Below, one piece after another: positions 25,309 to 64,000 of a stretch of 64,000 nucleotides of DNA; position 1 is the first letter of the stretch, and each line of letters opens with the position of its first letter. A program made the translations under genes and the position numbers. Below the pieces are notes generated by a model that was not told where the DNA came from, searched no databases, and saw nothing but the letters and a program-made list of their open reading frames with translations. Source of the stretch: Nageia nagi (lineage: Eukaryota > Plantae > Pinophyta). The stretch spans positions 34,472,001-34,536,000 of the forward strand of contig JBITNC010000002.1 in assembly GCA_050084985.1 (NCBI GenBank), in the 5' to 3' direction.

Positions 25309-26550
25309 GTAGTTAAATGTTGAATATTTTCTATATTAATTAATTACTTTTATTTTAAAATGAAGCAAATTTTTGCATATAAATGTCCTAAGCCCCTCTT
25401 ATTATTTAAGAAAAACTTAGAACTCTTTAGAATATACTAATTACAGTAGTAATGTTTTATGGTTAAATATCTTTTAAAGTTATAATTATAAATGGTGTAG
25501 GCTATCAAGCCTCCAGAATCCCCTTATACTCTAATACATTATCCCACTGCTATGCATGCATGACCCGATGAGCCATGCCATCAAGTTATATGAACTTCGA
25601 TTATCCCTCACTCCATGCATTTCATATAACCTTGTATATGCATAGGTCACTAGCTCATGCCTATCATGGCATGACATTGCCCCCATGCCCATGTAAAATT
25701 AATCAAACATAGTATAATAGGTACTTTTATAATGTTCGAATAACCCTTAGAATATACGAATGCCATAGATCTCATTGAATTTACAATGTTCGATTAACCT
25801 ACATCTCAACTATATTCGATTAGTCAAATTCTTAACATCATTTGATTAATCAAGATCTAATCAATGTATCAATAAACTCAAGATATAGATGATGTGCAAT
25901 AGTGACATATGGGCTAAGCATCGTACAATTAACCCAAATATCGATGATGTTCAATTAATCCAATGAACAATTACATTCTCTTAACTTCTATTTTCACGAG
26001 TTTGCCACCTTGAATGCAATTTGAATATCTATCTTGCATATAAAGGATTTCATTAATGGCCTAGGCTAATTGAACTATATTTATAGGTTTATACATTGGT
26101 CTATTAACCCATATGTTATATCACCTTACCTCCATTTTGAATATTGCCAACCATCGTACATGCATCCATTAATACGATTGTTAATCGAACATTGTAAATT
26201 CAATGAGCTCTAGGTTAATCAAACTTTATTTAGCCCAATAGATGAAGTTTGATTAACCCCCTTTAAATATATGAAAATATGGTCATTCTCTTTCACATTG
26301 TTGTTTGTATGTTGGGATGTTGATGTTGAAAGGATCTCTCAAACTTCATTTTGCAATCCATAAGTATCTACATGTCCTTAGGTTTTTTGTGTATGGGTTT
26401 TTATTTATTCTTCAACTTGCACTCCATGAAAGTTTGCATGCATATTGCAGTTTTTAAAAAAATACCCATGTATTCTCTATGCTTCTAAATTTTTCCATAA
26501 CCCATGATAATTGCATTCCATGAGATTGCATTTTAATGAGGCATTTTATC
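25309..26550 (+). repeat. Segmental duplication block A (paralogue at 62692-64000)
   Basis: Collinear from GTAGTTAAATGTTGAATATTTTC to GAGGCATTTTATCAA, roughly 90% identical by eye with a few indels. Confidence 0.95.
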
Positions 26551-27744
26551 AAAAAAATTGATATGCCCTTTCAATGTATCCATTTTGTGCATATTATATG
26601 ATCATTGTAGTCTATGAAACTATTTTTGCATCATGCATTTCAAACCTTCATGCTCTAATTCTCTCTTGATGGTTAATTTTAAAACCCTCTAGCTTGAATT
26701 CCTTCTCTCAATGATAATGGTTAGTTTTAAAACAATAAGTAATTGTCCACAAGTTTACTAAACTTCTCCTTGATGCTTGGTTGTAAAATCCTCTTACTCA
26801 ATCCATTAGTAATGTATGTATAATTATTCATATCAAGAATAATGAGATAAGAATCATTCATGCTATTAAATTATTTGTGAAACTTATGTGTTCTAAATTT
26901 TTTTCATACATGTTTATCAAGGTTGCTACCACAATTGCGTATGAAAGAAATTAGCATCGAATTAATGGTTTTTGCAATCTAACAACAGATTGGGATAAAT
27001 TCCTAGAGAGATTATGCTACAATTTTGCAACACAACCATCATTTCGTGGTATTCAAAGACTTTTCCAAAATAAATAATTTACTAGAAAAAACTTCATTCC
27101 ATTTACACAATAAATATCCTTTAATCAATAAATAGTAATTATTGCATGAACATTGTAAATCTTTTTAAATGCTTAAAATAGTTTGCATCTCTGACAATAA
27201 TTTATTGTGTAATAATTTTAGAAAGAATCTTTATATTAGAGTGAAAATTAGTGCATCTACTAACAAAGGTATCAAATCGAGGCTGTGAACCTTATTTGAA
27301 GAAATGTAAGGATCATTACATGTCTTCGAATAAATATGAGACTTTATAGTCAGACTAAAAAAGATATCAAAAAGTTAAAATTTTTGGAGGAAATAAAAAT
27401 TACATGTATGCTCCCTCTAGACCAAAGCCTCATAGTATCGATCTAATCGCCTTTTAGTAACATGTATACAATTGATGAAAACCTAGTGGGTGTATTTTTC
27501 ATATTCAAATTATTTGATACTTACATAGATTTGTGATAAATAAGTATATTGTGAAAAGATTTGGGTCCAATGGAGTAAAATTGAGATAAAAAAAAAAAAT
27601 CTTAATGAATTGGGATATAACCTTATGAAAATCTTTGATACATTTCATTTATGTAACACTTTTGAAGTTATTAGAAGAATTATAGTGTTTGTATATCCTA
27701 TACTCAAATTATCCAAATATAAAAATTAATAGGCAAAATAAATG

Positions 27745-36912: not shown

Positions 36913-37606
36913 TGGTATTCTATGAATGATTCATTAGATTTTATGCATATGTATTGATACTTTATTTGAGAATCATGATATTTTATGTATATAATGATAT
37001 CTTGCACGTATGTAATTATAAGCTTTGTATATATATGATTCACATTAACTTTGGGTAGGTGTTTGTATATATATGATTCACATTAACTTTGAGTAGGTGA
37101 AGACATGTCAGTTGACACATGCATAAGGTATCTACTCAATTAAGAAATGGTAAACTGAAAAAGTAGGTATACATATGCACATGATAAACTACCTAATATT
37201 TTCTCACCAAAAAAAATAAAACACCTGAAATATGATTAACATGTCCACAAAGTACACAACATTTTAATATACACCCAACATTTATAAACAAATTTGAACA
37301 AGATAGCCTTTTCCTATTTAAAATGGTGTACGTTGATTGTAACTTTTTGAAATGTTGGGTCCATGTATCTTGATAGGAGCTTTTTCAACACACTTTGTTT
37401 AGGCGTGAGATTCTTTCCAGCCATTTTATAATAATAATTTTTTTTTATATTAATATAATATTGATAAATCGCAGACGACATAACAAACCACATTGTCGAA
37501 TGAACTTTTGTTTCAACTAAGATTCAAACCTAACAAAAGGGATGATTGTAAACATTGTCTATATAATATTTCTACAACGAGAGCTGATAGCGAGTGATTG
37601 TTAAGC

Positions 37607-40444
37607 ATGGAGGACTCTCTACATTCCCCACTGTTGAATGAAGATTCGGTAGATGCAGGCGACATGCGTGAGATTACATCATGTAAACAGTTCACGACGG
37701 AATGCTTGCTTGAAAGCAAACGACTGTGGGTGATTGTTGGTCCTTCAATTTTTATCAGTGTGTCTACGTTTGCGCTTGGATCCATTACACAAACCTTTGC
37801 AGGTCACTTGGGAACGATAGAGCTGGCTGGCGTTTCCCTTGAGATTTCTGTAATCCAAGTACTGAGTTATGGAACCATGGTGAGTACTGAGTAGTACACT
37901 CAAATCATTAAACTTTTATGTCTCGTTTGTTGGTGGAATTGGTCAAGTGGTGACCATGGTCTCATGTTCAATTCCTTTCACTAGGAGACATACAGGTAAG
38001 TCCCATAGATTTATGTCGGTCTCCTGCGGACGTTAAAAAAACTTTTCCTTTTTTTCTGTTATTTGTTGAGTTGATCATGTTTTTATCTTGCTGCATCTTG
38101 TGTCCTATATATTCTATATATTCAGTTACCACTAGAAACATACATGCTATGTATAAGCTTACTACGGTCTTTCCATAGATCTGTTGATCTTCCTGTTACT
38201 ACGGTCTTTCCATAGATCTGTTGATCTTCCTGGAGGTTAATATACTTTACCGGAATCAACCTTAATGGATTAATCAAATCAGTTTATATTATATTGACTA
38301 CAGATGGGAATGGGCAGCGCATTGGAGACACTCTGTGGCCAAGCCTTCGGAGCAGGACAAATTCACATGCTTGGAGTTTATTTGCAGCGTTCATGGATAA
38401 TATTATTGAGTACAGCATTGTTTTTGAGTCTTGTTTACGTGTTTGCTTCTCCTATTCTTAAACTGATTGGAGAGGCAGATGATGTAGCTGACATAGCAGG
38501 AGTGTTTGCAATTTGGATGCTACCACAACTCATTGCCTTGGCGTTAAATTTTCCAATGCAGAAGTTTCTTCAAGCCCAGAGAAAAGTCATGGCCATGACT
38601 TGGATTTGCTTAGCTGCCATGATAATTCATATCGTTTTGAGTTGGTTTTTGATCTTCAAACTAAGTCTCGGGTTGGTTGGAGCAGCTATTTCATTGAACT
38701 TATCATGGTGGATAATTGATCTTTGTCAGTTTTTGTATATTGTTTATTATTGCAAGGATGCTTGGAAAGGTTTCTCCTGGCTGGCTTTTCATAATTTAGG
38801 GATTTTTACAGGACATTCAATTGCTTCGGCTGTCATGATCTGGTTAGTAAAACAATTATGGTGTTCGTCTATACTGAACTCAAATTTCCCAAATAAAAAA
38901 GCTAATAGGCAGAATAAATGAGCAAATATTTAAGGTTATTATATTTTAGCCTTGCTCACCGGTGATTGATCATATTCAGTTTGGAGGTCTGGTATATAAT
39001 GTCGTTGTTGCTTTTGACGGGTCATCTTCGAAATGCATTAATTGAAATCGATGCAATGTCCATCTGGTAAGCAGTCCCTTAATTCATTTTCATTTGGAAA
39101 ATTTTAAGATTCCCTTACCTGACTGCTTGCACTTTGCAAAAATATATTCCATGATCTGGGTACTGTATTCCTCTAAACTCACCTGCCCACATGTCCAAGA
39201 CCTTGCCTCTCTTTGTTTTATTCCTATTCTGAGTGCAAAAGTACGTACTTTGACATTTTCACTTATTCCTTTTACAGCATGAATTTGAATGGATGGGCTG
39301 CAATGATCTTCTTTGGTTTCAATATTGGTATTAGGTATGATTTTTTCATACATGGTATCAGATTTTCTGTTGTGTATTTGAGATTTTAATAACTAAATTA
39401 AATGATAATTAAATAATTTTAATAGAAATGTTACTTATATTCGCAGATAAACAAGAAAAAATAGTTAGTGAAAAGATAAAGTATGTATAAACATATCGAA
39501 GGAAAGTACAATTCCTTTAAATATAAACATATCCAAGAAGAGCCCAATGCTTCTCAGACCCTAATGGTAACATATGATAATGCGTCTCAATGACTTTTAG
39601 TAGTAGTTCCCACACACTAACTTAATCAGTATTTAACTACTTGCACAGTGTGAGAGTATCAAATGAACTGGGAGCAGGTCGCCCAAAAGCTGCAAAGTTT
39701 TCTGTTCTTATCGTGGTTGTAACGGCCTTGTTAATCGGCATTTTTTGTATGGGAGCCATATTTGTTACCAAAAATAAGTTTGCACTGTTGTTCACTGATA
39801 GTAAGGTGATCATGAAAGAAGTGTCCAGCATGATAACTTTGCTTGGACTGACAATGCTTTTATATAGTGTACAACCAGTTCTATCAGGTAAAGTTCAAAA
39901 TCATACTTCACATGACCTTCCTTCTTTAAATTGGGAATTTTTTTGTAGTTTCAAAATGTCACACAATTGTTACTAAGAGTTCTGTACATCAGGTGTGGCT
40001 GTAGGTGGAGGATGGCAAGCGGTAGTAGCCTACATAAACATAGGATGCTATTATCTCGTTGGAATACCCCTTGGTCTTCTTTTGGGATACAAGTTGGACC
40101 TTGGAGCAAAGGTGAATTTTTTCCTACCTATCTAGAATGTGAATTCCAAATTACTACTTTTGGTTCCTTGTTGCTACAAAACTAAAAGGGCTTTTGATTT
40201 TGATCTTCAGGGCATATGGGGTGGTATGCTTTGTGGAATAACACTGCAGACTCTCATTCTATTGCTAATCACATATTTCACTAACTGGAATAAAGAGGTA
40301 AAAAACATCATATTACTGAAATGGCTCTTGTGGCCCTTATCCCATGACTATGGTTTTTATCGTTTTCACATAATACAGGCTTCTCAAGCCGAGGATCGCC
40401 TCAACTCTTGGGGAAGTTCAGGTGAAGGCCATATTAATGAATAA
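37607..40444 (+). CDS. DTX: MATE family (DETOXIFICATION) efflux transporter, 8 exons, 488 aa, apparently intact
   Basis: Exons 37607-37879, 38304-38842, 38980-39066, 39278-39334, 39649-39887, 39993-40111, 40211-40297 and 40379-40444 are all GT-AG and total 1467 nt in frame. Motifs: [79 protein letters not shown] and TNWNKE. It resembles the DTX33-35-type clade (inference). Confidence 0.96.
37918..38041 (+). mobile_element. Putative short tRNA-derived SINE in MATE intron 1
   Basis: A-box-like TGGTGGAATTGG (37931-37942), B-box GTTCAATTCC (37966-37975) and an A7 tail (38035-38041). Flanking direct repeat AAACTTTT at 37910-37917 and 38039-38046. Confidence 0.55.
38159..38232. repeat. Perfect 37 bp tandem duplication in MATE intron 1
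   Basis: TTACTACGGTCTTTCCATAGATCTGTTGATCTTCCTG occurs twice. Confidence 0.95.
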
Positions 40445-42417
40445 CCCAGAGTAAGTACATGCATGCAAATAGCTACAGGTACCTATAGGTTCTAGAAAGA
40501 CGTCGTTTTGACTATATTCTAATCACTCATTGAAATTTGATCAGCAGAGGAACAAGGATGTTGAGAGTGAAAAGAGGACAAATGTATTTCAGCCTGAGAC
40601 ATCTTGTGAAGTGTGAACGGCTGAGATTGTTCTTCTGGGTGCACATGCTATGCAATAGCAAAGTTTCATGCTCCAAACTTGCAACATTCAGTGCCTTTAG
40701 CGAGAGAACCCACCAAATGATGCTTTCATGGCCCAATTTTGCTATTCTTATTAGCAACCTGGTTAGATTTTAATTAGGCAGAATACAATTGATTGTGAGC
40801 TGTGATTAAGTGGTAATACTTAAAGTTGATATTATGTGAATGATGCCTTTTAGGACTTACTAAGTAGCATAGTGATAAATGGTTAAATGTTTTCACCCGA
40901 TTACACTAAGATAAGTATGATAATTAATCTGTTCATTCTTAATGATTGTTACCATAAATGCCTTAAAAGAAGGACATTTTGCTATTTATCTTATACTAAT
41001 TTTATTCATCTTGGTTAATGACATTTGAGTTTTAGCTCCATTGTTTATATAGGTGTGTGATTGTCTAGAAAGAAAGGTGGGAAGTCAATAACTGTATATA
41101 AAATATTTGTGCTATCTTAAGGAATGAAGGTATTACGATGGGTGTAAGAAGTTGGGTCCATTTTAAGGTCGGAAAGTGGAAGTGTTTTCCTTGTTTTTTA
41201 AGTTTGGATATGATTGATCTCAAAATTTGAAGCACTTAGATATGGAATTATGAAAAATATCGCTACGATGAAAATATAGTGCTTAGAGTCTAGTTTTCAA
41301 ATATATAATTTTTCTAATACCCAGATCATAGAATTTAAAATTCGATTAGATGAACAAAAAACACTATTTAAAAAAAAACTATTTTTGGACCATACAATGC
41401 ACTTATCTGTCCACCGTAATTTGACTAAAATCAAAGTATTTTTTAAAATCCTTGTAGGCAAAGATACTTAACACATTGGATCTTAAACTGCATATTTTTT
41501 TCATTAGTATTTTTTTATTAATTTTGTACGAGGCATGTTTATGGTTTCGAAAAGTGCTCATGTTCATCCACCATAATTTGACGTAAACTTAATCTTTTTT
41601 CAATTTTTATTATTATTATTATTATAGAGAATTCTATGAAGCTTATCCCTATATAATTTAATTTTCATAACTCTCAAAAACCAAAACCTTATTAAGAAAA
41701 TATGAGACCCTCATATTTCAAGTTTATGGACTACTTTCACTAAAAATTAATAGAAAAATAAAAAATGTACTCCAATTTTAAAAAATTTGCATATTTGAAT
41801 TCGTCACTCTTTCATCTAAAACAAGTTTTAATTTTGTGAAAAAATTCAATCGAAATCACTATGAACATATGCTCGAAGTTACAATTTTGTACTAAAATCA
41901 ACCTTAGACATTTACTTGCAGGTCTAAGGCACAGGCTTGGCTCAACTAGCCTTTTTCGAGCATAAATCTAAGGCTGGTGGGCGGGTGAGGGGTGGTTGTG
42001 GGTAGGTAAAGAATTTTGAATATATCAGGATCTTGATATTTTATAGCTGTTGATATATCAAGATCTTGATATTTTATAATCGTTTAATTATTGGGATCTC
42101 GATTTGTTCGATTTAAGATTAAAAAAACAATTATCCATACATAAATGTTCTCTACATCATTCTCTTCCATTTTCATATAGTATGGCAAAGCATAACGATT
42201 TTTGTAGGAAATGAGTTGATATTATCATGCATGCATAATATTCAATTAATATACTAAGGTTATGATCTAAGGCACCTTTTTCAATCAATCTAAGGTTGAA
42301 ATAAATTTTTTACGAAGATATTGAAGGCCTTAATTTTGAAGCAATCATTGCCATTACAGTTATCTTTTTGAAGATATATAAAGTTGAATTTGTAAACTTT
42401 TCATATTGATCAACATC

Positions 42418-45400
42418 ATGGGTGATAAAAAATGCCAACAAAAGAGAGGAAGGAAGGTCATGACATCTGAAGATATTCTTGCAAAAAGAGAGAAGGATGC
42501 AAAAAGGAAAAGAGAGAGAAGAGCATAAAATAATGAACCAAATTGTAATGAAGTACATGAAAGTTCCATCCCAATTGAAGATGAGAAAATTTAAGAGAAC
42601 ATAAATGTAGATACGAATGTAGATATGAATGAAGATGATGCACCATTGAATGAACTTTCAAATTTAATGACTATGGAAATGAATGCAAGTATGTCTTTGA
42701 ATCTTTGTATCCTATTAGAGTTTTTGGTATTTTTCAACATTCTCATAGACCACTTAAAATGATAGCTCTAGCTTATGTTTTTACTTTTATTATTAGAGTA
42801 TTTTTTAGAATTTTGGTGCAAGTATACTAAATTCTATATGTAATCAAGTTATTTGACACTTCTATTAACCATCTTAAGAACCTTAATTATGAGAATAACT
42901 AATAATGGCTAATATGTAGGACCTAACAGAGTATATCCAACAATATTTACAAACATATAGTTGAATGATTGCTTCTCACAAACATATAGGAGATTAATGC
43001 ACCCACTTGACCAACAGGTTTGAAATCTTTACCAATGATTATTTGTAGGACCTTTCAAAGTTTGTCTAGAAGCGAATAGATAGATAAAATTCTTTTAGTA
43101 TCCTTTTTAAAATAAATTGGATTAATTTAGGACATATGATCAATGTTTATTCCAAAGTATTTACCAACATATAGTTGTATGATTGTTTTTATAAAAAAAT
43201 AGGAGACTAATTTAGGACCACTTAATCAATGTGATTCAACATTTTGCAAAAAGGGTTAAACATTTTACCAATGGGGTTACTTGGTTGTAGGGTTTAGAGT
43301 TTTAAGTTTGAAGGATTAAAGATTTTAAGAATTACTTATGTTTACCCATTTAATGATTAAAGGTTTAAGATTTTATCAATTTACAATAAAGGGTTTAAGA
43401 GTTTAAGGGTTTAGGGGTAGGGTTTTATAGTTTATTAGGGTTATAGTGTTTACATTTTAGTGTTAAGGTTTATAAGGTTATAAGGGTTAAAAATTTGACC
43501 AATGGGGCCAAACATGATGTTAAAGGGGTTCAAGACTTTAAGGGATAGTTGGGCTTAGGAACTTAAGATTTTAAGAGTGTAGTGGTTTAGGGAAAGTAAG
43601 GGTTTAGGGTTTAGGATTTACAATTTTAGTGTTTAGGTTTGTTTAAGGATTTAAGTGTTTTTAAGGCTTAAGGGTTTAGGGTTTACATTTTAGTGCTTAG
43701 ATTTGCTTACTTGGATTAAGGGTTTAAGGTTTAGGTTTTAAGGTTTAAGGGTTTAAGGTTTAGGTTTTCATGTCCTATAAAGGTTTGGCCAATGATTTTA
43801 AATTCAAAATTTGGCCAATGGAGTTAAACATGTGATGTCTTAAGGGTTTAAGTGTGTAGCAGTTTAGGGAAAGTAAGGGTTTAGGTTTTTAGGGTTTAAG
43901 ATTTAAGGTTTTAGTATTTAAGTTTATTTAAGAATTTAGGTATTTTTAAGGTTTAAGGGTTTAGGGTTTACATTTTAGTGCTTATATTTGCTTACTTAAC
44001 TTAAGGGTTTAGGGTTTATGTTTTAAGTTTTAAGGTTTAAGGGTTTAAGGTTCACATTTGTATGTCCTATCAACATTGGACAATGATGTTAAATTTAAAA
44101 TTTGGCCAATGGGGTTAAATATGTGATGTCCTATCAACCTTTTAATGCTCTTCAAATTAGGATAAGCATATATGTCACATAATGCCACTATATATTAATT
44201 TGTTTAAGACTTAAGGGTTTAGAACTTAAGTTTTTTATTTTCTTTGAGTTTACATAATGCTATTATATATTGGTTACTTAATTTCTTTAATTTAATTAAC
44301 TAACTATTAGTTTAATGATTGATTAAATCTTCAACAAGTCACTAATTAATTATTGTATGCTAAGTTTTTTTCATGTGTAGTAAACTTTGGTGAGCCAACC
44401 CTTAGCCTTGGAGTACCAACTATGGACACAAATACATTTATATCTTCAAACCCACATGTTAATGATATTGAGAATGAAAATATTGATAATACTGATGATA
44501 AAAATATTTTTTTTACGTATTGAATGTGATATCTTAGATAATGTTCCTAGTACGATATCTATGAGATAAATAAGAACACATGCAAATAGAATATATGATC
44601 AATTTTTTCTTAATAAGGAGCTAGGATTTCAATGTCAACTCATGTTACAATTAATGAGAATGTCTTAAATGGGAAGAGTAATGAAAAATTTAGGTGTTTG
44701 TATGAAAAAGAGGAACCCTTAAAATAAGTTATACCACTATTGCTAATGCCATGGACTCTATTAGGAAGAAGAATCATTTTAAAGACACGAATGTAGCATG
44801 ACGAGCCACAACAACTACTTTAGTAAATAGATCAACTGTAAAGGAAAAAATGATTGGTAATCTTAATGGATATCTAAATATAAACCCTAAAACTTTGCAA
44901 AGAACTATGAAGAGAAGAAAAAGCATTAAAATTGATTCAATCAACCAATGTTGAAGTTTTAGTGGTAGACTTCCTAGGTCTGATAGGAAATTCACTAATG
45001 AGATAAAAAAATGTAATTGAAAAATATTGGCAATCATCATCAATCTAATCATGCAAAACACTTTTTAGATATGACTTAATGTGAATTATACAATAAATTT
45101 GTAAATGAGAAAGTGTTAAGTAGTTTTAATATCAGCTTAAATCAAAGATTTTTTGAGAAATGCAACCATTGGTATGTTAGAATTAACAAGAAAAGAATGA
45201 CATGTTGTTGTAAAACTCATATGCAATTTAGATATTATTATAAAAAAATTTTATATATACATGGTACTTAGTATATGAACAACTTACTGTAGGGATGTGG
45301 TTTTAACATGCCACCTGAATCTATCAATGAGTTTATAGCAAATTTATTTTATCAAATTCCAAATGGTCAATCATTTTATTCATATGCATGTATTTCAAGA

Positions 45401-47052
45401 TAATGAAGTATATGTGGGAACCTTTTATTTTTAGGATAATGTGTACATGAAAGTAGTTTACATGATTTTTGAAAAATATTAGTGGATATCCAAAAATTTA
45501 AGAATGTTGAGTACGCATTGAAGGATGGAAAAACTGGGAAGCATATTGATCTAATCATTGAAAAGGTTAGTATACATACATTTATGGATGATTTTAAGAG
45601 TAACTTTATTCCAAAATATGTGAAACATTCCCAACATGCTCAATGGCTTGATAGTGAATTTTTTCAATGTAGAAACATATTCCCATATGGAACTATATTA
45701 TCAGTTGTAGACTTTGCAAAACATTATACTCTAACACTATAAGAAATACAGTCTCAATATTATAATTCTCAACAAGTTTCCATTTTTATTCATAATGTAT
45801 ATAGACATGATAGTACAGAAGATAATAAAAAAGTTTTATGGGAGTACCATTTTTATGTAAGTGATAACATATTGCACTCACCAAAGTTTATCCAATTTTG
45901 CTTTGAGATATTTTACACAAATTTGAAGGAATGAAATATTCATATGGCACAACATTTGATATGGTTAGATAATTTTACAGGGAAATTTAAGAATGCATGC
46001 ATGTTTTATTGGTTAATTAGGATGCACAGAGAACATAATATCCAACATATATGGTCATTTTTGAATCTGTACATGGTAAAGGTGAACATGATGGAGCTGG
46101 TGCATGTGTTAAAAGAGCTCTTGCTAGAGAACAACTTAAATTTGTAGATTCAATGAAATTTCAATATGCATGTGCAATTATGGATTGGTGTAATGCAAAT
46201 ATATCTACCAAATCAAAAGAGAATTCTACAGTTCAATGATTCTTTTGGTTAGTTGAAGAAAATAATATTACTAGTCATCATGATTGTGAGACAATTAATG
46301 GATCAATGAAATGGCATTCATTTAGGAGTTCAAATACAAGCACATGGATTATTTGGACAAGGGAGCTTGCATGTTTTTATGATTCTTGTATTGTAGGTGA
46401 ATTAGAAGCATGTATAAATACAAAATAGGTTGAGGAATGAAAAAAAAGATCTTTAACACCTACAAGAGCGCATGATGAACAAGATTTATTTATTGAATAT
46501 GAGAATCAATTATTTGCATTAGAGGACTATGATTAGGTTTTTGACCTTGTACAATAAGGTAATTTAAAATTTATTTTTTATTAGTTTATTTATATGAATG
46601 CTCTTTTTTGTATATATTTAACTAGTTTTATATGTCATACTTAATTGATATAAAATTTATTTGCAAGACATGTGTATGCTATTATGGAACCTGAAGGGAA
46701 TGAAGAGGAATTAGAATAATTGTTGGCTCAATGTGTTGAAAAAAAACATAAGTTAACTTATCCTTGATGTGATGATGATGGGTTTGAGTTCCCAACAAGT
46801 TCCATGGTTTTTGTTGGTACATGGATACAAAAAATAGTATCAACAAGGAATGGTCTGAGAGTATATAAAGATTATGAACCAAACAAGAAAATTATTCACT
46901 ATTTGCATTTGATACAAGCAATAAATATTAAACTATTTAGATATAAAGGGAGGCCTACTAATAGAGTGTTGTGGAAATATTCAATGCAAGAACATGAGGA
47001 GATTATGAATGCATTACATGAAATAGAGGATGTAGATGGTATCAATGATTAA
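42418..47052 (+). pseudogene. Decayed spliced DDD/E transposase, Sola2-like
   Basis: Putative exons 42418-42688 (MGDKKCQQKRGRK...KRKRERR), 44381-46558 and ~46667-47052. Motifs: FFEKC..WYV...TCCCKTH, LSVVDFAKHYTL, EIQSQYY..QQVSIFIH, YHFYVSD...HS, HLIWLDNFTGKFKN and FESVHGKGEHDGAGACVKRAL (ORFs 45482, 45944, 46051, 46804). Multiple stops and frameshifts. Confidence 0.8.
43270..44220 (+). repeat. Degenerate telomere-like (TTTAGGG/TTTAAGGG) repeats, including a ~300 bp tandem duplication
   Basis: For example GGGTTTAGGGTTTAGG at ~43600, ~43672, ~43957 and ~44005. The segment 43500-43810 is similar to 43815-44120. Confidence 0.85.
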
Positions 47053-47059
47053 AAAATAT

Positions 47060-48617
47060 AGGTAGGCTTATCTATTCTTCTTCACCTCCCCTTCATATCC
47101 ACTTCCCCTTCTCCTTCACCACTTCATCTCCACTTCCCCTTCCCCTTCATAACTTCATCTCCACTTCCCCTTCCTCTTCATCACTTCATCTCCACTTCAC
47201 CTATGCACTTTTATCGCCACTTCCCCTTCTCCTTCACCCCTACGCCCCTTCATCTCCACTTCCCTTACCTTCTCCTTCACCCCTATGCCCCTTCATATCA
47301 ACTTCCCTTGCCTTCTCCTTCACCCCTATGCCCCTTTAGCTCACCCCTTTAGTTCCACTTCCTCCTTTCCTTCACCACTACACCACATCATCTCCACTTC
47401 CCCTTTTCCTATGAGATGCACCTAAAGTGGAGCCTCCCATTATCTACGATAAAACATGTAAAGGTGTTTACATTTGAAATTAAGTATCCATATATAATTT
47501 AAATTAATTTAGAAATACATAAATTACATACATATTAAACACACTAAAAATATGGTAAATGTATCTCTCTCTTAGTAAGATCAACATTATCCATGGACAT
47601 CATCTCTATATAAGACACCCTAGGACTAGCTAAAGTGGGAACAACACAAAAAATGTCACAACTAGGACAAAAATGAAGTATAAATCCACTAACTCTAGCA
47701 TCATCTCTATGCTCACTAACATTAGCTACCGTAGCTTATTCAGTGAGAGTCTAGGTCACCTAACTCAATACTCCTAATGCCAAAATAATTTCCTGATGAA
47801 AAGCTAGGGCAAGAACAAAAGGAGTAGGAGGAGGGATGAGTGGTGTAGGATGTGTGGGTCGACTTGGATTAACCCATGCTCCAATTCTATTTTTTCCCGA
47901 GCCATGACCAATCCCTTGATTACATCTCATATCAAAATAATTCACATGTTTTCCTAAAATACACTCAACATATATTTTTTCCAAAAATATAAAGGTACAT
48001 CAAAATTGGAATGTGGTGGTTTATTAAACATCATCCACCATTGACACCAAAAATTTTCAACTATCATAGGATGGATGCATCAGTCATAGGGAATTCTTTC
48101 TTTGTTAGGTAGGATGGATTTTTTGGTAGATGGATCAATGAAAAGTGGAGAAAGGGTGACTTTGGTAATACCTAACTTATTCACCTCTCGAGTGGAGAGA
48201 CCATTTGAATAATATTGTCTCATGCGATCTCTCCATGACTTGAAACCATGCATATCACCATCACCACTACTAATGGTATCAACTACAATTTGAATCAAAT
48301 ATACAAACCATATAACATGGCTTAGAGAGCTATGAATACTTTGAATATGGTGAATCTTTTCTTGTAACTAGTTAATGTCATGAGCAATTGCATCTTAATG
48401 TTGCTCATCAACACAAATGGGTTGGGGTAGGGTTGGTGGTGTGAGGGGTAGAGATGGAGAGGGTGGTGTGGGTGGAGGATTAACATGTGGTGAGGGTGGA
48501 GTATTTACATGTGGAGGGGGTGAATTATGTGGGATATTTTGGGTGACATCATCCAGTGTCTGATATATGTCATGATAAAATTCTTGGGATGATTGGGCCA
48601 TGATATGAAAAGACACC
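47060..48617 (-). pseudogene. Decayed unknown protein gene inside the transposon, convergent with the transposase
   Basis: ORFs 48395-48622 and 48080-48298 share a frame, separated only by a TAA and a TAG. ORF 47760-47984 follows after a 1-nt shift. There is an acceptor-like TTTGCAG at ~48618, a Pro-rich N-part, an aromatic core (FWCQWW, PLYFLEKIYVECILG..VNY) and a Cys-rich FCPSCDIFC. A probable last exon is formed by G/E-rich repeats at ~47440-47070. Confidence 0.6.
47075..47410. repeat. CT-rich low-complexity tandem repeat (~30-45 bp units)
   Basis: CTTCATCTCCACTTCCCCTT(C)TCCTTCA recurs about 8 times. Confidence 0.85.
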
Positions 48618-51600
48618 TGCAAACATTATTGCAATAACATCAAAATAAAAATAAACTCACTATCACATATGCCATAACATTAGGCAATATGATGTCATGT
48701 ACATGTTTAACAATAAATACAATAAATATGCAAGGAAATCATGTACATGGGTTGAATTTGTGAACATATTTAGAACTAAAATTATAGATATTTATCTAAA
48801 CTACTATTATCAATAAGAAGGAAGTTTGAAATAAACTTTCTCTGCTTGATCAATAGTCTAAGTGCTACAAATAACCTACTCCAACACTATATTTTAAGTA
48901 GGAAGTTAAACCATATGGAACTTGGTAAATTTTTATAGGAAATATGTCTATAACTTCAATGAAATACATATGCATACATCATGTGACTATATTTGAAAGA
49001 TGAACCCTCCTAGGACCTTTAATTATTATATTTCATAATTAATTTTATGAAGATATTACCTATGTCCCCTAGGATTATTTTTTTCTTGCCTAATAATATT
49101 TGTTGACAATACAACAAATAGGTTTTTGACACATCTTCCAAAATGAAATGAAATACTTGTTAAAAATAAAAAATATCATTAATTTCTAAGTTTACACATT
49201 TTACCTTGAATTCCAAAGGTACTAGGAAGATTCATGTAAGTCGTTGGAAAGAATAAGTTTGAAGGCATAATTCCAAATGTTATACTGTTGATGCTAAGTT
49301 AGAGTGTGAAAAGGTTTGGAAGAGATCCTAAAATTCCTTTTTGATTGCTATAAAACATGATTAAGCATCTTAAAATATAAAATTTTACCAATAGATATTC
49401 TTAAAAATTGCATAAGAAATAAAAATGCATAAATAAAGTCCAAATCCAAGAGATCTACCATGTATTTGTTGATGGTTTTTGATAGATTCTATTTAACTTA
49501 AAGGAAGCTTCAATATATCATGCATTTAGATCAATTCCATTGATTAAATCCTCAAATCAATTTATACGGGTATGAATTTGAGTTCAATTAATTGGAAAGA
49601 TATTGGCATAAGGTTCTCATAAATTTTTGTTTATGATAGTATGCTTGAAGATCTTTACATCCTATAGAAAAACAAAATAGTTAATTATATTAAATAAGTT
49701 ATTCTTCAAGAAACTCTAGGAAAGAGTGAAGCTCTTTTTATTAAAAAAAAGCATAAGGTTAAGGCTCAAGAAAATGGGACAAAAGAAAATGATCAAGATT
49801 AAAAAAAGTGATAAACTCAAGGATAGGAAGGGATATTATTATCATGTCTAGTCAAATCATAAGGAGAAGAAAATTTTGAAGAAAATAAATGACCTCCAAA
49901 ATGAGATAGAGAAAATGAATGGTATGTCATCCAAGGGGGATTCCTCTAGTAACATTATGATAGAAAGGACCTCTCATGAAGAGTAAGTAATACTTTTCTA
50001 TTCTTATGGAACTAGAATGTTTTCTATGAATGAGGATTTACATCCATCAAAATATTTTATTTTTAAATAAAAAATTTAAAACCATCTAGATTTCAAGATA
50101 ACATTTATTATATAATTTATATTATATTCATTTTCAAATTAATGTGGTTAATCTTAGGAGATTTATAAAAGTATCAATGTTATTTAGATTAACTTAGATA
50201 TATTAAAGATATATCTAGAAAATGTATTATAGTTTATTTTACAAGGGATGAAAACCATTTAAGAAAGTGAATTATATGGATTAACCACACCTTAAGAAGT
50301 TGAAGTAGGAAGGCCACATGAAAATAAAATTATGAATCTCATTAAATTTCATAAGAAATTACAAGTTAGTGAGTTTAAGGTTGATAAAAGGTAGAAAACC
50401 AAAAGTATAGATGAAATATTAAAGGTATCACTCAAGGAGAGAGGCACTAAGAATAATCCATGGGGTAAAGAACCTAAGCTTGGTATCAAGAAGCTATAAA
50501 AACATCTAAAAGATATATTTTAGATGTGTAACTAATATACAAAATATGGTTATTTATCTAGATGGTACCAAAACCACAAATATTAAAGAAGTGTAATAAA
50601 AAGCAACTGCAAAAAATATTATTGTTGGATAAATTCAAGCATAGAAAATGAGAATGCAAATACATTTAGCAGCATGGAGGAAGATTTCATCTTGTATTTG
50701 TAATATTATTTTTTAATTCTTATATTATAAATGTGCTTTTAGTTTTTATTTCTTACTCAACATAAAGGGAGAGAATATTATAATATGTGATATTGAGTGT
50801 TCATATGTGATCATGATACTTATTAATCACCATTAAAAAAAATTATTTATTATAAATATATTTTTTGTAATTGAAGGGGTTATGACTAGATGAAGATTAT
50901 GGAATCATAAATAGACATCCACAAGCTTGTAACACATTCTATATTATGTTGATGACTAATGTACTAAATGTAAATATAGTAGTTAGGTGTTTATAATATG
51001 GAAAATAACAATTATTTATAAATTTTATTTATTATGTTGACAATAATAGATATATGTGATCCTTCAACTAAGTATGCAAACTACTTTAAAATTAGTTGTT
51101 ATAGTTTTTAATCATATAGAAAATGGCATGGATATAAAGAGTTGAGATAGATCACTTTACAAGTGTGGAATGATAATAAGAGAGAAATTGTAAGCCCTTA
51201 GAAATATATTAAATGTGAGACTAGATGAAAAAAATAAGTGTATACTTATATTATTAGTTAAGAACTATGAGATGTAGTTTATGAGTAATATGGAGACTTT
51301 AAAATGAAAACTATATTGGATTCAAATGATTTTTTATATTTTAAGAGCAATTAATTAGTACATTGATTTAGATTCTTCTAACAATATGACCACATGAACA
51401 AGAGTTCATTTTTTACCATAAACATAGCAACAATGGTCATTTTGATATGAAAATAACTAATAATGAGGTTCTCATAATTATCAAAACTAGATATTTCAAG
51501 AATAAATATGGACATATTCAATATGTCTTCTATGTACAAAAATTAGAAATAATATATTAATATAAATCTCTTATCTAACATTCAACTAGAACCTAAATAT

Positions 51601-52234
51601 GATTAAGCATCTTAAAATCTAAAATTTTACCCATAAATATTCTTAAAAATTGCATAAGAAATAAAAATGCACAAAGAAAGGAATCCAAGAGATCTACTAT
51701 GTAAATATAAAATTATAGATAGTACTTAATTTCATATTTTCTAACAATAGTTAAATCCTTGAATCCTCTTTGAAATTTATCCTATTAGTTGATTATTTTA
51801 GAGGTATTCATAATTGCCTTGGATATTTTTTGAGGATAGGACCAAATGTTCTTGATGATACTCAAGACTATTTCCATACATTAAATGAACCATAGAAGGA
51901 TTTGAAAGGAATAATATAGGAATTATTACCTTTTGGAAATAAGTGAGGGTTACAAACCCATAGATTCTAGGCAGTGATAAAATATTATATGTTATTTTAT
52001 ACAAATATTGATAACATGTATTTGTTGATGGTTTTTGATATATTATACTATAAGTTAAATGAAGCTTCAACATCTCATGCATTTGTATTTTTTGATGGTT
52101 TTGCTAGATAATATGTTTGATGATCTTTACATCCTATAGATATAAAAAAATAGTGAATTATATTAAATAAGTTATTCATCAACCAACTTTTGGAAAGAGT
52201 GAAGCTATTTTCATAAAAAAAAGCATAAGGTTAC

Positions 52235-52930
52235 TTGGCTTAGGAAAGTATAATTATTCACTTATTTCTCCTTTAAGGAGTTGATTATGTAAGAATTCAT
52301 CTATTTTGTAAGGAGTGTTAGAATATCAGGGAGAAACTTTTTTAATTACCTATTCTTCTACTATCTCTTTAAACCCAATCAAATTTTCAAAATAGTGAAT
52401 TTCATGAATCTCTAATTTCAAAGATGTCATCTTTTAAGGATGCATTTTCCTTAATAATTTCTATAATCATATTAAAGCTTTAATGTCTTGATGTTTTTGT
52501 ATGAAATAATTTGATGTTGTCATTCACATCCTTTAACTATAAGGCTTATCATTTATAGCTCCAAAAGGACTCCTCATAGGCTAAGGTATTGTATAATATG
52601 CTAGGAGTTATTTTTTCTTCTCTCTAGTTTTAACTACAAGAAGACCCTCCTCTATAATTATCTCAATATTAGATAACTGATACTTTAGGTCTAATTTCCT
52701 TTGAAACAGTTTCTTGAAAATAGTTCTATTCTATCATTTTAAAATGATTTTGATAAATTTAAGATTTTTAATACAACTTATGAGATTAAAGGCTCTAAAA
52801 CTCCTACTTCAACCATTATTCTATGTGAGGCTCAAGGTTTTCATGTTTCAACCATATTTATTCAAAATGAGGACGGATATTAAACTATTTGCTAGGAATC
52901 ATATATTTTGAACTTGCCTTACAAAACGTG
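52235..52930 (-). mobile_element. L1-type LINE ORF2 remnant (endonuclease-RT linker) nested in the transposon
   Basis: The minus strand reads PHFE*IWLKHENLEPHIE*W...KNLKFIK...LFQRK...AYEESFWSYK**AL*LKDVNDNIKLFH, matching the plant L1 motifs PFRFE.MW and EE.FW.QKSR..WLK.GD.NTK.FH. Confidence 0.65.
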
Positions 52931-53459
52931 CTTAGAATAACATCTCTAAAATAAGGTTAATTGGTGGGTTGTTTCTTCCCTCCACCCATAGCTAAGGTTA
53001 ATTGGGTTTAGTTCTAAGTTACTTCTTTAGTAGTTTCTCCCACTCTAATTTTCTATTATGAAGGTCATCTATAAACTTTAGATCATAACCAACATCTATT
53101 GCTCTATTTTTACTACTAGTTATTCAAATTGAACTACTTCACTCCTTTCTAGAATTCATTTCTTTTAGGGAGTTATTTTGCACCTCTTCCACTCCTCCTA
53201 TAGATTATGATTTCCCCACTTGGTAAGAATCTAATCATTTATAATTGTATATAGATTTCTTTACATTCCTAGATGTCATTTTGGATTTTAGTCTCCAAGT
53301 CATCCTCATGGTCATATAGAAAATCAAACATATTTGTAACATATAACTTATTTAAAATTTAAAAAATTAGTCAAAAGAGGGGTAAGTATCCTCATGCTAA
53401 AGATAAAGGAGGATCCCTTGGAGTCTCACCCAAAGGATTTGAGTCAAGGGATGGAAGTT

Positions 53460-53715
53460 AACTGGTTTATCTTAACAAATTTAAGAAAAGGAAAAAAGGA
53501 TTTTAACCAAAAAAAACCCTACTTTTTTTATTATTTTATCTTACAAAATTAAGAAAAAAAAATGGATTTTAACAAAAAAAACCTGCTTTTTAACTGTTTT
53601 ATCTTAACAAATTTAAGGAAAAAAAAAGGATTTTAACCAAAAAAAAAAAACCTTACTTTTTAATTGATTTATCTTGACAAATTTAAGAAAAAAAGTATTT
53701 TAAGCAAAAAAAACA
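53460..53715. repeat. ~65 bp A-rich tandem repeat x4
   Basis: TTTATCTTAACAAATTTAAGAAAA..GGATTTTAACCAAAAAAAACC occurs four times. Confidence 0.85.
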
Positions 53716-55363
53716 TGTTGATATGAAGGAGCACTTACTCAGACACTATAGGAAGAATTTGGAGGTAGTTGGTGGCTTTGGAGTGAGAAAAATTAGGATA
53801 TTGAATTCACTTGGTTGTCTCCCCCACTCGTTGTAAGTTGCAAGCTATAGAGATGCTATAGGAATTCAACTTCAAAATATCAAGATCTCGATATGTTCTA
53901 AGATTGGGGTCCCAAAATATTAGGATCTCAATATTTTTGACCTTGAATTTTTTACTCCATACTTCCTCTCAAAGTGGACCCAACTTCTTGCTTCCACAAG
54001 ATAGTATTATTTCTAAGTACTAATTGGTTGATCCAAAATAACTAGATGATGGATTAATATTGTTAAGTTCTCATCTAGGTCAACCATATTAAGGTATGGA
54101 AATGAAAGCATTTAATTGAGAGTTTTTAGTGAAATTAAAACAAAGGTTTAAATATGCTAACTAATGAATTATTATACCTCATTACGAGAAAAAATGTGAA
54201 GACTAAATGTATAATGCCAAAATAATTAGAAAGGCACCATGGATTCCACTAATAGGGATAAGAAAGTTTGATGATTTTGTCAAAATAAGAAATTATTACT
54301 TTTATAAGTATTTATTTGAATAGTTAAATAGGAAAAATACTATCTATGGATATAAGTCCAAATGCCATTACTAAATATATTCCAAGGAAGGGATATATTA
54401 TGTTAGTGCTAATATTATATTTAGGGGAAAAAATGGGCAAGGATAAAATTAATATACTTATATATTCGAATAATGGTATGATCTATTTAATACCTTTGAC
54501 ATGAAAATTTGAAAAAGATATTCATAAAAATATCCAAGCCTAAGGAAATTAACATTATTAAGATTATATAAGTCTTTGATTCTACATATTACTAGGAGAG
54601 AATTTCAATTAATAAGTAGAGAGAAATCCATAATAAAGGATTTGGTGATTATCAAAGTAATTGGTTAGCGATTGATAACTCATCCTTCTAGTGATTGAAT
54701 CTGGTAAGTGGCGAATGAAGTATGAATTCAACAACTTAATGACTCCATAACAACTAGTATAATCAAAAATGATTAAGGAAGATAAATATCATGTTAAAGA
54801 AGAGTCACCACCTAATGAGGAAGTTGTCATCCTAAATACAAATTGTCTTACATATTTGTTGAAAGATAAAGCATATAAAAAGATAGAAGCAAATAAAAGA
54901 AAAGGGAGTTTTATTAGGAGATGTATTAGTTACTTAGATGGTACTATAACAATTGCCTAACTTATTAGCATCGTATAATATTACATATTCATACATATGA
55001 TACCTCCACTACTTCAAATCATTAAGTATTCGAGATATCTTAATTTTTACAAAGCTCTTATCCTATCTTTCAAAGCATCTCATTTTCTCATCTATAAGAA
55101 AGGACTCTAATGGATCATTTGCATCATTAGACCAATCAACGAATCCTTTATTGGGAAACATATTCAAATAATGTAATTATTCTTATAGTACCAAAGATTG
55201 CACAAATGTTGCTGATGAAATTGGCTTTGCAGGATATAGGAGAGTAAATAATTCCTTCGAATGAAGCTAACCCTCAAGTGGAAATGGTAAAAGGATGGTA
55301 AAATTTGTATCCTATCCCCTCTCTCTCTCACTTATTTACATATTAATCATTTTTTATTGCACA

Positions 55364-62100: not shown

Positions 62101-64000
62101 CATGAGGAAAATGAGATATACATGGTAAGTTGCTCAAGCAACCATGAGGATGTTCCCTCTCATTTTAGGATCATTTCATGATGCCATTACACAAGTGGAG
62201 TATGGCGGTTATATCATTTCAAATGGGTAGAAAGTGAGTGATAGGTTAAATGCAGTTTAGACATAAAATTTATGAGATCATGTTATTGTATAGGTTTCAT
62301 GTCCAATTTCTTTTCATCTTGAGACATACACTTGCGCACACATTAATAGTGGAAATTCACATCCCATAGATATATGTTGATCTTCAATAGATGTTAAAAA
62401 CCTTTCCCTTTCCCTTTTCTCTAATCTAAAATCCATTTCCTAATTTATAATTAATGGTTCCCTTCTCAGTTTCATTGGTACAAGTCACTCTACACATATG
62501 AAAGTAGAATTTTTCACATCCCCCTTCAAATTCAAACGAGAGAGGTTTAACAAAAATAGCTTAATGCAGTACACTTATTTACCTTTTGGAGGTGGGCTTT
62601 GGATATGTGCAAGGATTGAGTTTACGATGAAATGAAAGGAAATATTATTAATGTCTATGATGGCCCAAATATGACCTAAGTGAATGAAAAAGTAGTTAAA
62701 TGTTGAATATTTTCTATATTAATTAATTACTTTTATTTTAAAATGAAGCAAATTTTTGCATATAAATGTTCTAAGCCCCTCTTATTGTCTAAGAAAAACT
62801 CAGAACTCTTTAGAATATACTAATTATAGTAGTAATGTTTTGTGGCTAAATATCTTTTAAAGATATAATTATAAATGGTGTAGGCTATCAAGCCTCCAAA
62901 ATTCCCTTGTACTCTAATATATTGTTCCATCGTTATGCATGCATGACCCGACAAGCCATGCTATACGAGTTATATGAACTTAGATTATCCCTCTCTCCAT
63001 GCACTTCATATAACCTTGTATGTGCATGGTTTGTTGGCCCATGCCTATCATGGCATGACATTGCCCCCATGCCCATGTCAAATTAATCAAACGTAGTATA
63101 ATAGGTACTTTGACAATGTTTGAATAACCCTTAGAATATACGAATGCCATAGAGCTCATTCAATTTACAATGTTCAATTAACCTACGTCTCAACTATATT
63201 CAATCATTCGAAGTCTTAACATGGTTCGATTAATCAAGATCTAATTAGTGTTTGATTACATATGTATCAACAAACTCAAGATATAGATGATGTGCAATAG
63301 TGACGTACAGGCTAAGCATCATATGATTAACCCAAATATCGATGAAATTCAATTAATCCAAAGAATAATTATGTTTTATTAACTTCTATTTTCACGAGTT
63401 CACCACCCTGAATGCAATTTGAATATCTATCTCACATATCAAGGATTTCATTAATGGCCTAGGCTAATCGAATTGTATTTAGAGGTTTATACATTGGTCG
63501 AGTAACCCATATGTTATATCACCTTACCTCCATTTTGAATATTGCCAACCACCATACATGCATCCATTAATATGATTATTAATCGAATGTTATTTAGATG
63601 TTTATACACATTTGGATTAACCCCTAACCCATACAGTTTAGTACGTGTGAAGGATTACTAGGTTAATCGAACTTTATTTAGCCTGATAGATGAAGATGGA
63701 TTAACCCCCTTTAAATTTATGAAAATATGGTCATTCTCTTTCACATTGTTGTGTGCATGTTGGGATGTTGATGTTGAAAGGAGCTCTTGAACTTCATTTT
63801 GCATTCCATAAGTATCTACATGTCCTTAGGTTTTTTGCATACAAATTTTTATTTATTCTTCAACTTGCACTCCATGAAATTTTGCATGCATATTGCAGTT
63901 TTTAAAAAAATTCCTATGTCTTTTCTACGCTTCTACATTTTTTCATATCCTATGATAATTGCATTCCATGAGATTGCATTTCGATGAGGCATTTTATCAA
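59151..64000 (+). repeat. Duplicate copy: block B' (59151-62695) fused to block A' (62692-64000+)
   Basis: Collinear with 31245-34791, then immediately with 25309-26550. The junction shares GTAG. Confidence 0.95.
62045..62680 (+). pseudogene. Second copy of the CYP716/725-like P450 pseudogene fragment
   Basis: Reads EELTWDDMRKMRYTW*VAQATMRMFPLILGSFHDAITQVEYGGYIISNG*K, then intron 62234-62469, then YTYLPFGGGLWICARIEF. Confidence 0.88.

Follow-up and report, generated by a model that had tools for sequence, protein, structure and literature searches.

Here we report on a stretch of 64,000 nucleotides of Nageia nagi DNA (contig JBITNC010000002.1, positions 34,472,001 to 34,536,000; hereafter the window, in whose coordinates positions are given), which is AT-rich (GC content 0.22-0.36). 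Between two imperfect terminal inverted repeats (TIRs) it contains the broken gene of a transposase and, on the opposite strand, the remnant of a second open reading frame (ORF2). Judging from the sequence, we are confident that this 12.9 kb stretch represents an old and inactive, full-length-type copy of a Sola2 (DDD) cut-and-paste transposon in a conifer-like seed plant. An earlier note on the same DNA had proposed a large two-gene element of this kind. The transposase gene and the ends of the element comprise the following features; L004 is a related copy found in public metagenome contigs.

41136..41167, + strand: left terminal inverted repeat (arm 41139-41167)
44419..45112, + strand: segment preceding the transposase core, conserved in sister copy L004
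45113..46558, + strand: main block of the Sola2 transposase remnant, which retains the zinc-motif region (CCCxxH) and every catalytic block
46559..46667, + strand: probable short intron of 109 nt, GT..AG (AAG/GTAATT ... TTGCAAG/A, slashes marking the splice points)
46668..47052, + strand: C-terminal part of the transposase (profile positions 519-586), with 2 premature stops and the natural stop at 47050
53968..53999, - strand: right terminal inverted repeat (arm 53968-53996)

The motif series from TCCCxxH to HGKGEHDGAG that the earlier note had read is present on the + strand of 45113-47049 with all five of its members (TCCCKTH, DFAKHY, SDNILHS, LDNFTGKFKN and HGKGEHDGAGACVKR). The catalytic blocks of the main block are DFAKHY, SDN..H, LDN..GKFKN and HGKGEHDGAG, and the three acidic residues of the DDD active site are retained despite the broken state of the gene. 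The main block (45113..46558) is interrupted by 13 premature stops and a frameshift near position 46040. In the frame that is colinear with homologues, 8 stops fall within 45113-46040, 5 more follow up to 46558, and 2 are located in 46669-47049. Since its transposase gene thus contains 15 premature stops and one or more frameshifts, the window copy is dead and unable to move by itself.

From 45113 to 46425 the gene forms one block that is colinear with its homologues and interrupted by stops and one frameshift, so that the spliced look of the core, which the earlier note had attributed to introns, is mostly an effect of these. What stands of that claim is the likely presence of a single short intron at 46559-46667. 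This segment is AT-rich and filled with stops, coincides with a break of about 110 nt in the colinearity with homologues (between the positions of ...GD and NFAV...) and occurs in L004 as well; in the decayed window copy, its phase is one base off. The N-terminal part of the transposase is probably encoded, in another frame, by the upstream region (44419..45112).

Searches with the broken transposase used its stop-free pieces separately. One piece of 86 amino acids, compared with 1.84 billion representatives using phmmer, gave 67 matches, mostly short fragments. Among the longer ones were proteins from a liverwort, Riccia sorocarpa, and a protist, Lithocolla globosa, and the Riccia protein, used as a query in turn, led to metagenomic proteins of about 600 amino acids and to an echinoderm protein at an E-value of 7e-16. 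A profile constructed from 17 of the longer homologues was run on all stop-to-stop pieces of the window and matched six of them in colinear order, with E-values from the order of 1e-16 to that of 1e-3:

45473-45739: profile positions 119-202, E-value 1e-16
45743-45931: profile positions 207-266, E-value 5e-13
45935-46144: profile positions 269-311, E-value 8e-3
46039-46236: profile positions 307-364, E-value 3e-13, in the other frame
46240-46425: profile positions 370-432, E-value 9e-9
46768-47049: profile positions 519-586, E-value 1e-3

The profile had no match elsewhere in the 64 kb, which indicates a single transposase copy there. A profile search with 12 relatives retrieved 181 proteins, mainly from echinoderms (including S. 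purpuratus), molluscs, hemichordates, hagfish and fish, and the family profile matched echinoderm, mollusc and S. purpuratus proteins with E-values down to 1e-110. Echinoderms, molluscs, hemichordates, hagfish and fish are the classic hosts of Sola2. Among the 130 retrieved proteins of at least 450 amino acids, 114-123 contain the blocks D[FYW]xEN, SDG....[FY]K and HGK..D. The nearest full-length relatives of the window transposase belong to the group of about 600 amino acids (metagenomic proteins and Riccia), which are 25-45% identical to the animal proteins.

The RNase H-like (ribonuclease H-like) cores of reference elements are printed in the supplement of Majorek et al. 2014 (PMC3985635), where group E.12 comprises Sola2-1_HM and a partner from S. 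purpuratus. Its blocks read ..DFAENYT..QxEIQSxHW.., ..F(I)SDDxxHD.., ..(T/S)DGxxxQYK.. and ..(S)xHG, and the cores of Sola1 (E.10) and Sola3 (E.13) in the same supplement are clearly unlike them. When the printed Sola2-1_HM core was compared with the window by eye, VDFAKHY, YVSDNILHS, WLDNFTGKFKN and SVHGKGEHDGAG were found in the same order as in E.12, which they fit block for block. The assignment to Sola2 made in the earlier note is therefore supported both by the profile matches and by the published core alignment. Scans of the transposase pieces and six longer homologues against Pfam and NCBIfam (E-values up to 1) matched no family; this excludes the CACTA, hAT, Mutator, PIF/Harbinger and Tc1/Mariner superfamilies, for which Pfam models exist, as had been proposed from the motifs.

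The ends of the element are marked by an imperfect inverted repeat of 29 nt per arm (41139-41167 and 53968-53996; 83% complementary), which encloses approximately 12.86 kb and agrees with the TIRs of about 28 bp, 12.9 kb apart, described at first. Its exact 15-nt core, AAGAAGTTGGGTCCA, occurs at only two sites of the 64 kb window, in opposite orientation, with a chance expectation of 0.12 matches even if 2 mismatches are allowed. A 19-nt TIR pattern scanned across public metagenome contigs yielded 11 loci, six of which (L002, L004, L005, L006, L007 and L011) are left ends of sister copies of the same family. Every time, the likeness to the window (72-79%) begins at 41139-41142, and the sequences further out are unrelated. 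Sister copy L004, which is likewise dead, remains colinear with the window from the left end up to and including the transposase, at an identity of 72-79%. The consensus of the left terminus among the sister copies is GGGTGGGTGC followed by AAGAAGTTGGGTCCA. The window copy starts either with GGGTGT at 41140, after a 4-nt deletion, or, if aligned without a gap, with CGATGGGTGT at 41136.

For the right end, contigs from four related sequencing runs were aligned over 48050-54049. Directly past 53997 the contigs depart from the window (42, 12, 67 and 3 contigs in the four runs), and according to their consensus, related copies have two further C at this point before diverging in AT-rich DNA. The right terminus of the family is therefore ...GCACCCACCC, which mirrors the left and is located at 53998-53999 of the window. 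Given the six sister left ends and the divergence of contigs past 53997, both ends are common to other copies, which answers the concern raised beforehand that other copies might not be bounded by these TIRs. Judged by the consensus of the sister copies, the true termini are at about 41136-41140 and 53998-53999, a few bases outside the earlier coordinates.

Downstream of the transposase gene, the interior of the element contains the following features:

47060..47416, + strand: CT-rich 31/43-bp tandem repeats, directly 3' of the transposase gene, as in L004
47957..48625, - strand: ORF2 remnant, 223 codons interrupted by 3 stops, its N-terminal part rich in proline, convergent with the transposase
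49353..49761, + strand: internal direct repeat, first arm; identity between the two arms 87-93%
51595..52233, + strand: internal direct repeat, second arm, lengthened by an insert of about 310 nt

When stop density was scanned in windows of 150 codons, only the transposase, 47981-48789 (- strand) and 42.1-42.8 kb stood out inside the element, and 48.8-53.9 kb gave no coding signal. At 48080-48082 the window reads TGA, where the contigs of the four related runs almost without exception read TGG (Trp), and three of the six other best-supported differences between ORF2 and these contigs are synonymous. On account of the Trp codon and the synonymous differences, a second, convergent reading frame probably once existed in the family; the claim of two genes is unproven. 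From the second gene of the earlier note there remains a decayed minus-strand frame of 223 codons; a gene of 6.7 kb and a recognisable relative were not found.

It is possible, if somewhat short of an even chance, that the family is a genuine two-gene element and that ORF2 was an accessory gene needed or exploited by the active element. The remnant contains 3 stops in 223 codons, where about one per 12 codons is expected, its stop at 48080 is a TGG codon in nearly all related contigs, and the ORF2 segment is highly repeated in relatives; however, the seven substitutions available, including the three synonymous ones, do not suffice for a test of selection. No coding signal is seen in the remainder of the proposed 6.7 kb gene, and a word-level search of 5.8 billion clustered proteins found no homologue of the ORF2 pieces, which also had no neighbour in the ESM Atlas. 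A test for TnpB/Fanzor was worthwhile because amoebozoan Sola2 elements carry Fanzor1; 13 stop-free pieces from both strands of 47.5-53.6 kb gave no Pfam match and no TnpB/OrfB, with a sensitivity limited by the short and decayed nature of the pieces. Nor is there anything resembling ORF2 within 3 kb past the transposase of L004, a region in which L004 and the window have nothing in common beyond the CT-rich repeats (47.4 kb).

In two deep related runs the summed contig depth was 9744 and 5221 at 48050-48249, compared with 2015 and 3574 at the right end, and in the same runs it was mostly below 70 across 48650-53850. It follows that the ORF2 segment either has been amplified more than any other part of the family or belongs to another abundant repeat. 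The segment 48050-48450, which underlies the ORF2 remnant, may be an independently amplified piece. In contigs of two related runs, 49273 is joined straight to 51595, and so forms exist without the 2.3 kb between the arms of the direct repeat; these forms (without 49274-51594) arose either by recombination between the repeats or because the window lineage underwent a duplication.

A composite origin is less likely, though still to be reckoned with. In that case part of the interior (the whole of 48.65-53.6 kb, or the ORF2 segment as a piece of another high-copy repeat) would consist of later insertions, duplications or captured DNA, and both the length of 12.9 kb and the two-gene layout would be accidents of the window lineage. 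The excess of ORF2-segment depth over that of the TIR ends, with the low depth in between, fits such an origin, as do the internal direct repeats of 0.4-0.6 kb, the forms without 49274-51594 and the lack of any common sequence between L004 and the window beyond 47.4 kb. Yet the candidate internal boundaries are without TIR, target-site duplication (TSD) or ends of the long terminal repeat (LTR) type, and no part of the interior resembles any other repeat of the 64 kb window. Moreover, the interior exists elsewhere, as 50.1-53.4 kb is covered at 95-99% identity by contigs from two small runs, and deletion derivatives of any DNA transposon would likewise cause a low interior depth. For L004, a gag-like zinc-knuckle frame (C..C....H region) at L004 287-517 (- strand), downstream of the L004 transposase, suggests that a retroelement was inserted there, and such an insertion would account for the divergence of L004 from the window past the CT-rich repeats.

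It is doubtful that the Sola2 lineage of conifers has a conserved accessory gene of its own, ORF2, without known relatives and with its segment amplified beyond the ends of the element. If this were the case, a conserved ORF2 would be a plant parallel to the amoebozoan Sola2-Fanzor chimeras and a protein of a new kind.

Four points weigh against the assignment of the whole 12.9 kb stretch to one Sola2 copy. The similarity to named Sola2 elements was established via intermediate homologues and the published alignment. A profile made from the animal proteins only matches the window pieces in the right order but weakly (E-values 2e-5, 4e-4, 0.25 and 0.93), which places the window transposase in a divergent, plant-associated branch. 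The right arm and the transposase-bearing left part were seen joined in the window copy only, L004 diverging past the CT-rich repeats. Finally, the 4-bp flanks of the window copy are unequal, CGAT on the left and GATA on the right, or AGAT (3 of 4 positions equal) if 53998 is taken as the right end. Both flanks have the 3 bp GAT in common when the termini are set at 41140 and 53999; a left end without a gap, at 41136, has ATTA as its flank. Among the sister copies the left flanks (n = 6) mostly end in T, and the consensus of the right flanks in relatives mostly begins with A; this tendency to A..T is compatible with the 4-bp AWWT TSDs of amoebozoan Sola2, of which it is no proof. That the element represents a distinct, undescribed DDE/DDD superfamily with only short motifs in common with Sola2 is very improbable: the absence of a curated Pfam model, the weak animal-only E-values on decayed pieces and the unequal flanks would fit, but the four core blocks equal the published Sola2 core in order and spacing, the Riccia and metagenomic proteins of about 600 amino acids are tied to echinoderm proteins by E-values of 7e-16 and better, and the block series recurs in almost all of the long relatives (114-123 of 130).

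The Sola2 copy further comprises non-coding arms with several repeat arrays:

41168..42103, + strand: left subterminal region, 72-79% conserved in L002, L004, L005, L007 and L011
42016-42103, + strand: left subterminal 33-bp repeats; palindrome ATATCAAGATCTTGATAT at 42022 and 42055
43384..44234, + strand: degenerate telomere-motif minisatellite with variants TTTAGGG, TTAAGGG and TTTAAGG and a higher-order unit of about 290 nt
53458..53714, + strand: right subterminal 64-bp tandem repeat, 3.9 units
53877..53894, + strand: right subterminal copy of the palindrome, ATATCAAGATCTTGATAT with 1 mismatch

The structured subtermini of the initial description are recovered in the 33-bp repeats with their palindrome, its copy on the right and the 64-bp tandem repeat. 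The minisatellite, which is located upstream of the transposase, accounts in its 0.85 kb for 8 of the 14 TTTAGGG and 10 of the 11 TTAAGGG motifs of the window, and is common to sister copy L005 (L005 6047-6750). Neither ARAGORN (whole window) nor Rfam at E-values up to 1 (element) detected a tRNA or other RNA. Three further candidates were rejected: a nested LTR element at 49353-52233, which has no TG..CA ends and no TSD; an insertion at 48655-53629 (joint 48654/53630), which has no TIR or TSD and is represented by one contig with a 20-nt side in a tandem repeat; and a gene in the minus-strand frames at 42.1-42.8 kb, where three overlapping frames and a strong GC skew point to an effect of composition.

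In an active family, the transposase would bind the terminal inverted repeats of 30-40 nt and probably the palindromic subterminal repeats, and its RNase H-like DDD active site would excise the element and reinsert it with a short target-site duplication. This mechanism is inferred from membership in the family.

The Sola superfamily was reportedly described by Bao, Jurka and Kapitonov in 2009, with Sola2-1_HM from Hydra as the reference for Sola2. The window element shares with this group the order of the core blocks (DFAENY...EIQS, F(I/V)SDD..H, SDG..QFK, F..S.HGKG..DG.G..K), a CxCxxH region upstream of the core and short, imperfect TIRs, and its relatives are commonest in marine invertebrates. 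It differs in its conifer-like seed-plant host, the great length with repeat arrays and the unequal 4-bp flanks of the window copy. Its layout, with two convergent frames between TIRs, resembles that of the Mutator element MuDR, which has two convergent genes, including mudrB, between its TIRs. Here the likeness ends, because the transposase is unrelated (no MULE or Transposase_mut match in Pfam) and the TIRs of the window element are far shorter.

Comparable in architecture are the Sola2-Fanzor1 chimeras of Dictyostelium fasciculatum and Polysphondylium pallidum (Bao and Jurka 2013; PMC3627910), which are 10.3-15.3 kb long (12,887 bp for DFa-2) and encode a transposase and a Fanzor1 gene between imperfect TIRs of 12-22 bp, with AT-rich 4-bp TSDs (AWWT). 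Their families share the transposase side and are entirely different on the other side (PMC3627910). Large size, short imperfect TIRs, a transposase with a second frame and copies that differ on the other side are common to these elements and the window element, whereas ORF2 of the window comprises about 223 codons without Pfam signal for TnpB/Fanzor (RuvC, zinc ribbon), and the host belongs to another kingdom. As such two-gene elements of 10-15 kb were described in 2013 (PMC3627910), the novelty seen in a two-gene Sola2 was overstated.

Sola2 has long been regarded as a group of animals and protists. A survey of 2015 (PMC4438587) lists it in animals only. According to the part of a 2026 preprint on Cupressus sempervirens that was available (bioRxiv 10.64898/2026.07.23.736688), Sola2 is the most abundant class II superfamily of that species; the same part gives a superfamily label from an automatic pipeline, with no ends, gene structure or accessory frame. 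The window element agrees with Sola2 of C. sempervirens in its conifer host and high copy number, a comparison at the level of the superfamily. With this record and the homologues annotated in Riccia sorocarpa, the notion of a poorly described plant lineage goes too far. The window element is an ordinary dead copy from a family belonging to a superfamily already recorded in conifers, and modestly new are its defined ends, subterminal palindromes, telomere-motif array and single intron and the evidence of a once-open second frame.

To our knowledge, Sola2 is missing from the usual tools for plant transposable elements, with the consequence that such copies remain "unclassified" in the giant genomes of gymnosperms. 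A described reference with ends, subterminal repeats, gene structure and an optional second frame would improve the annotation of conifer repeats, and would allow a test of whether the Sola2 elements of land plants (liverwort and conifer) are ancient and vertically inherited or were acquired horizontally. Beyond this reference value, a single dead copy adds little.

The right half of the element is represented by hundreds to thousands of contigs in four runs (80-99% match), and these counts indicate that the family is abundant in several related species. In sequencing runs from 11 or more coded organisms, and likewise in air metagenomes, parts of the transposase region make up a small share. 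The flank of L002 (436-550 and 1810-1885) matches other repeats of the window (26505-26607 and 63865-64000), and the metagenome contigs Ga0181464, Ga0115848 and Ga0181473 therefore contain DNA from the same or a closely related plant. A tandem repeat of the window at 25196-25293 matches L003 (8662-9372) at 81-92%; L003 is otherwise unrelated and was picked up by the TIR pattern by chance.

Just upstream of the element, the exons of a host MATE/DTX efflux transporter occupy 37598-40444 on the + strand. This gene, taken with the plant telomere motif, is in keeping with a plant genome. A frame of 205 amino acids (38304-38921) matches Pfam MatE with an E-value of 1e-24, and the exon-like frames at 37598-37894, 39641-39976 and 40139-40444 were read as the N-terminal, middle and C-terminal parts of the MATE protein. 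The last exon ends about 0.7 kb before the left TIR, and the element is located downstream of the gene.

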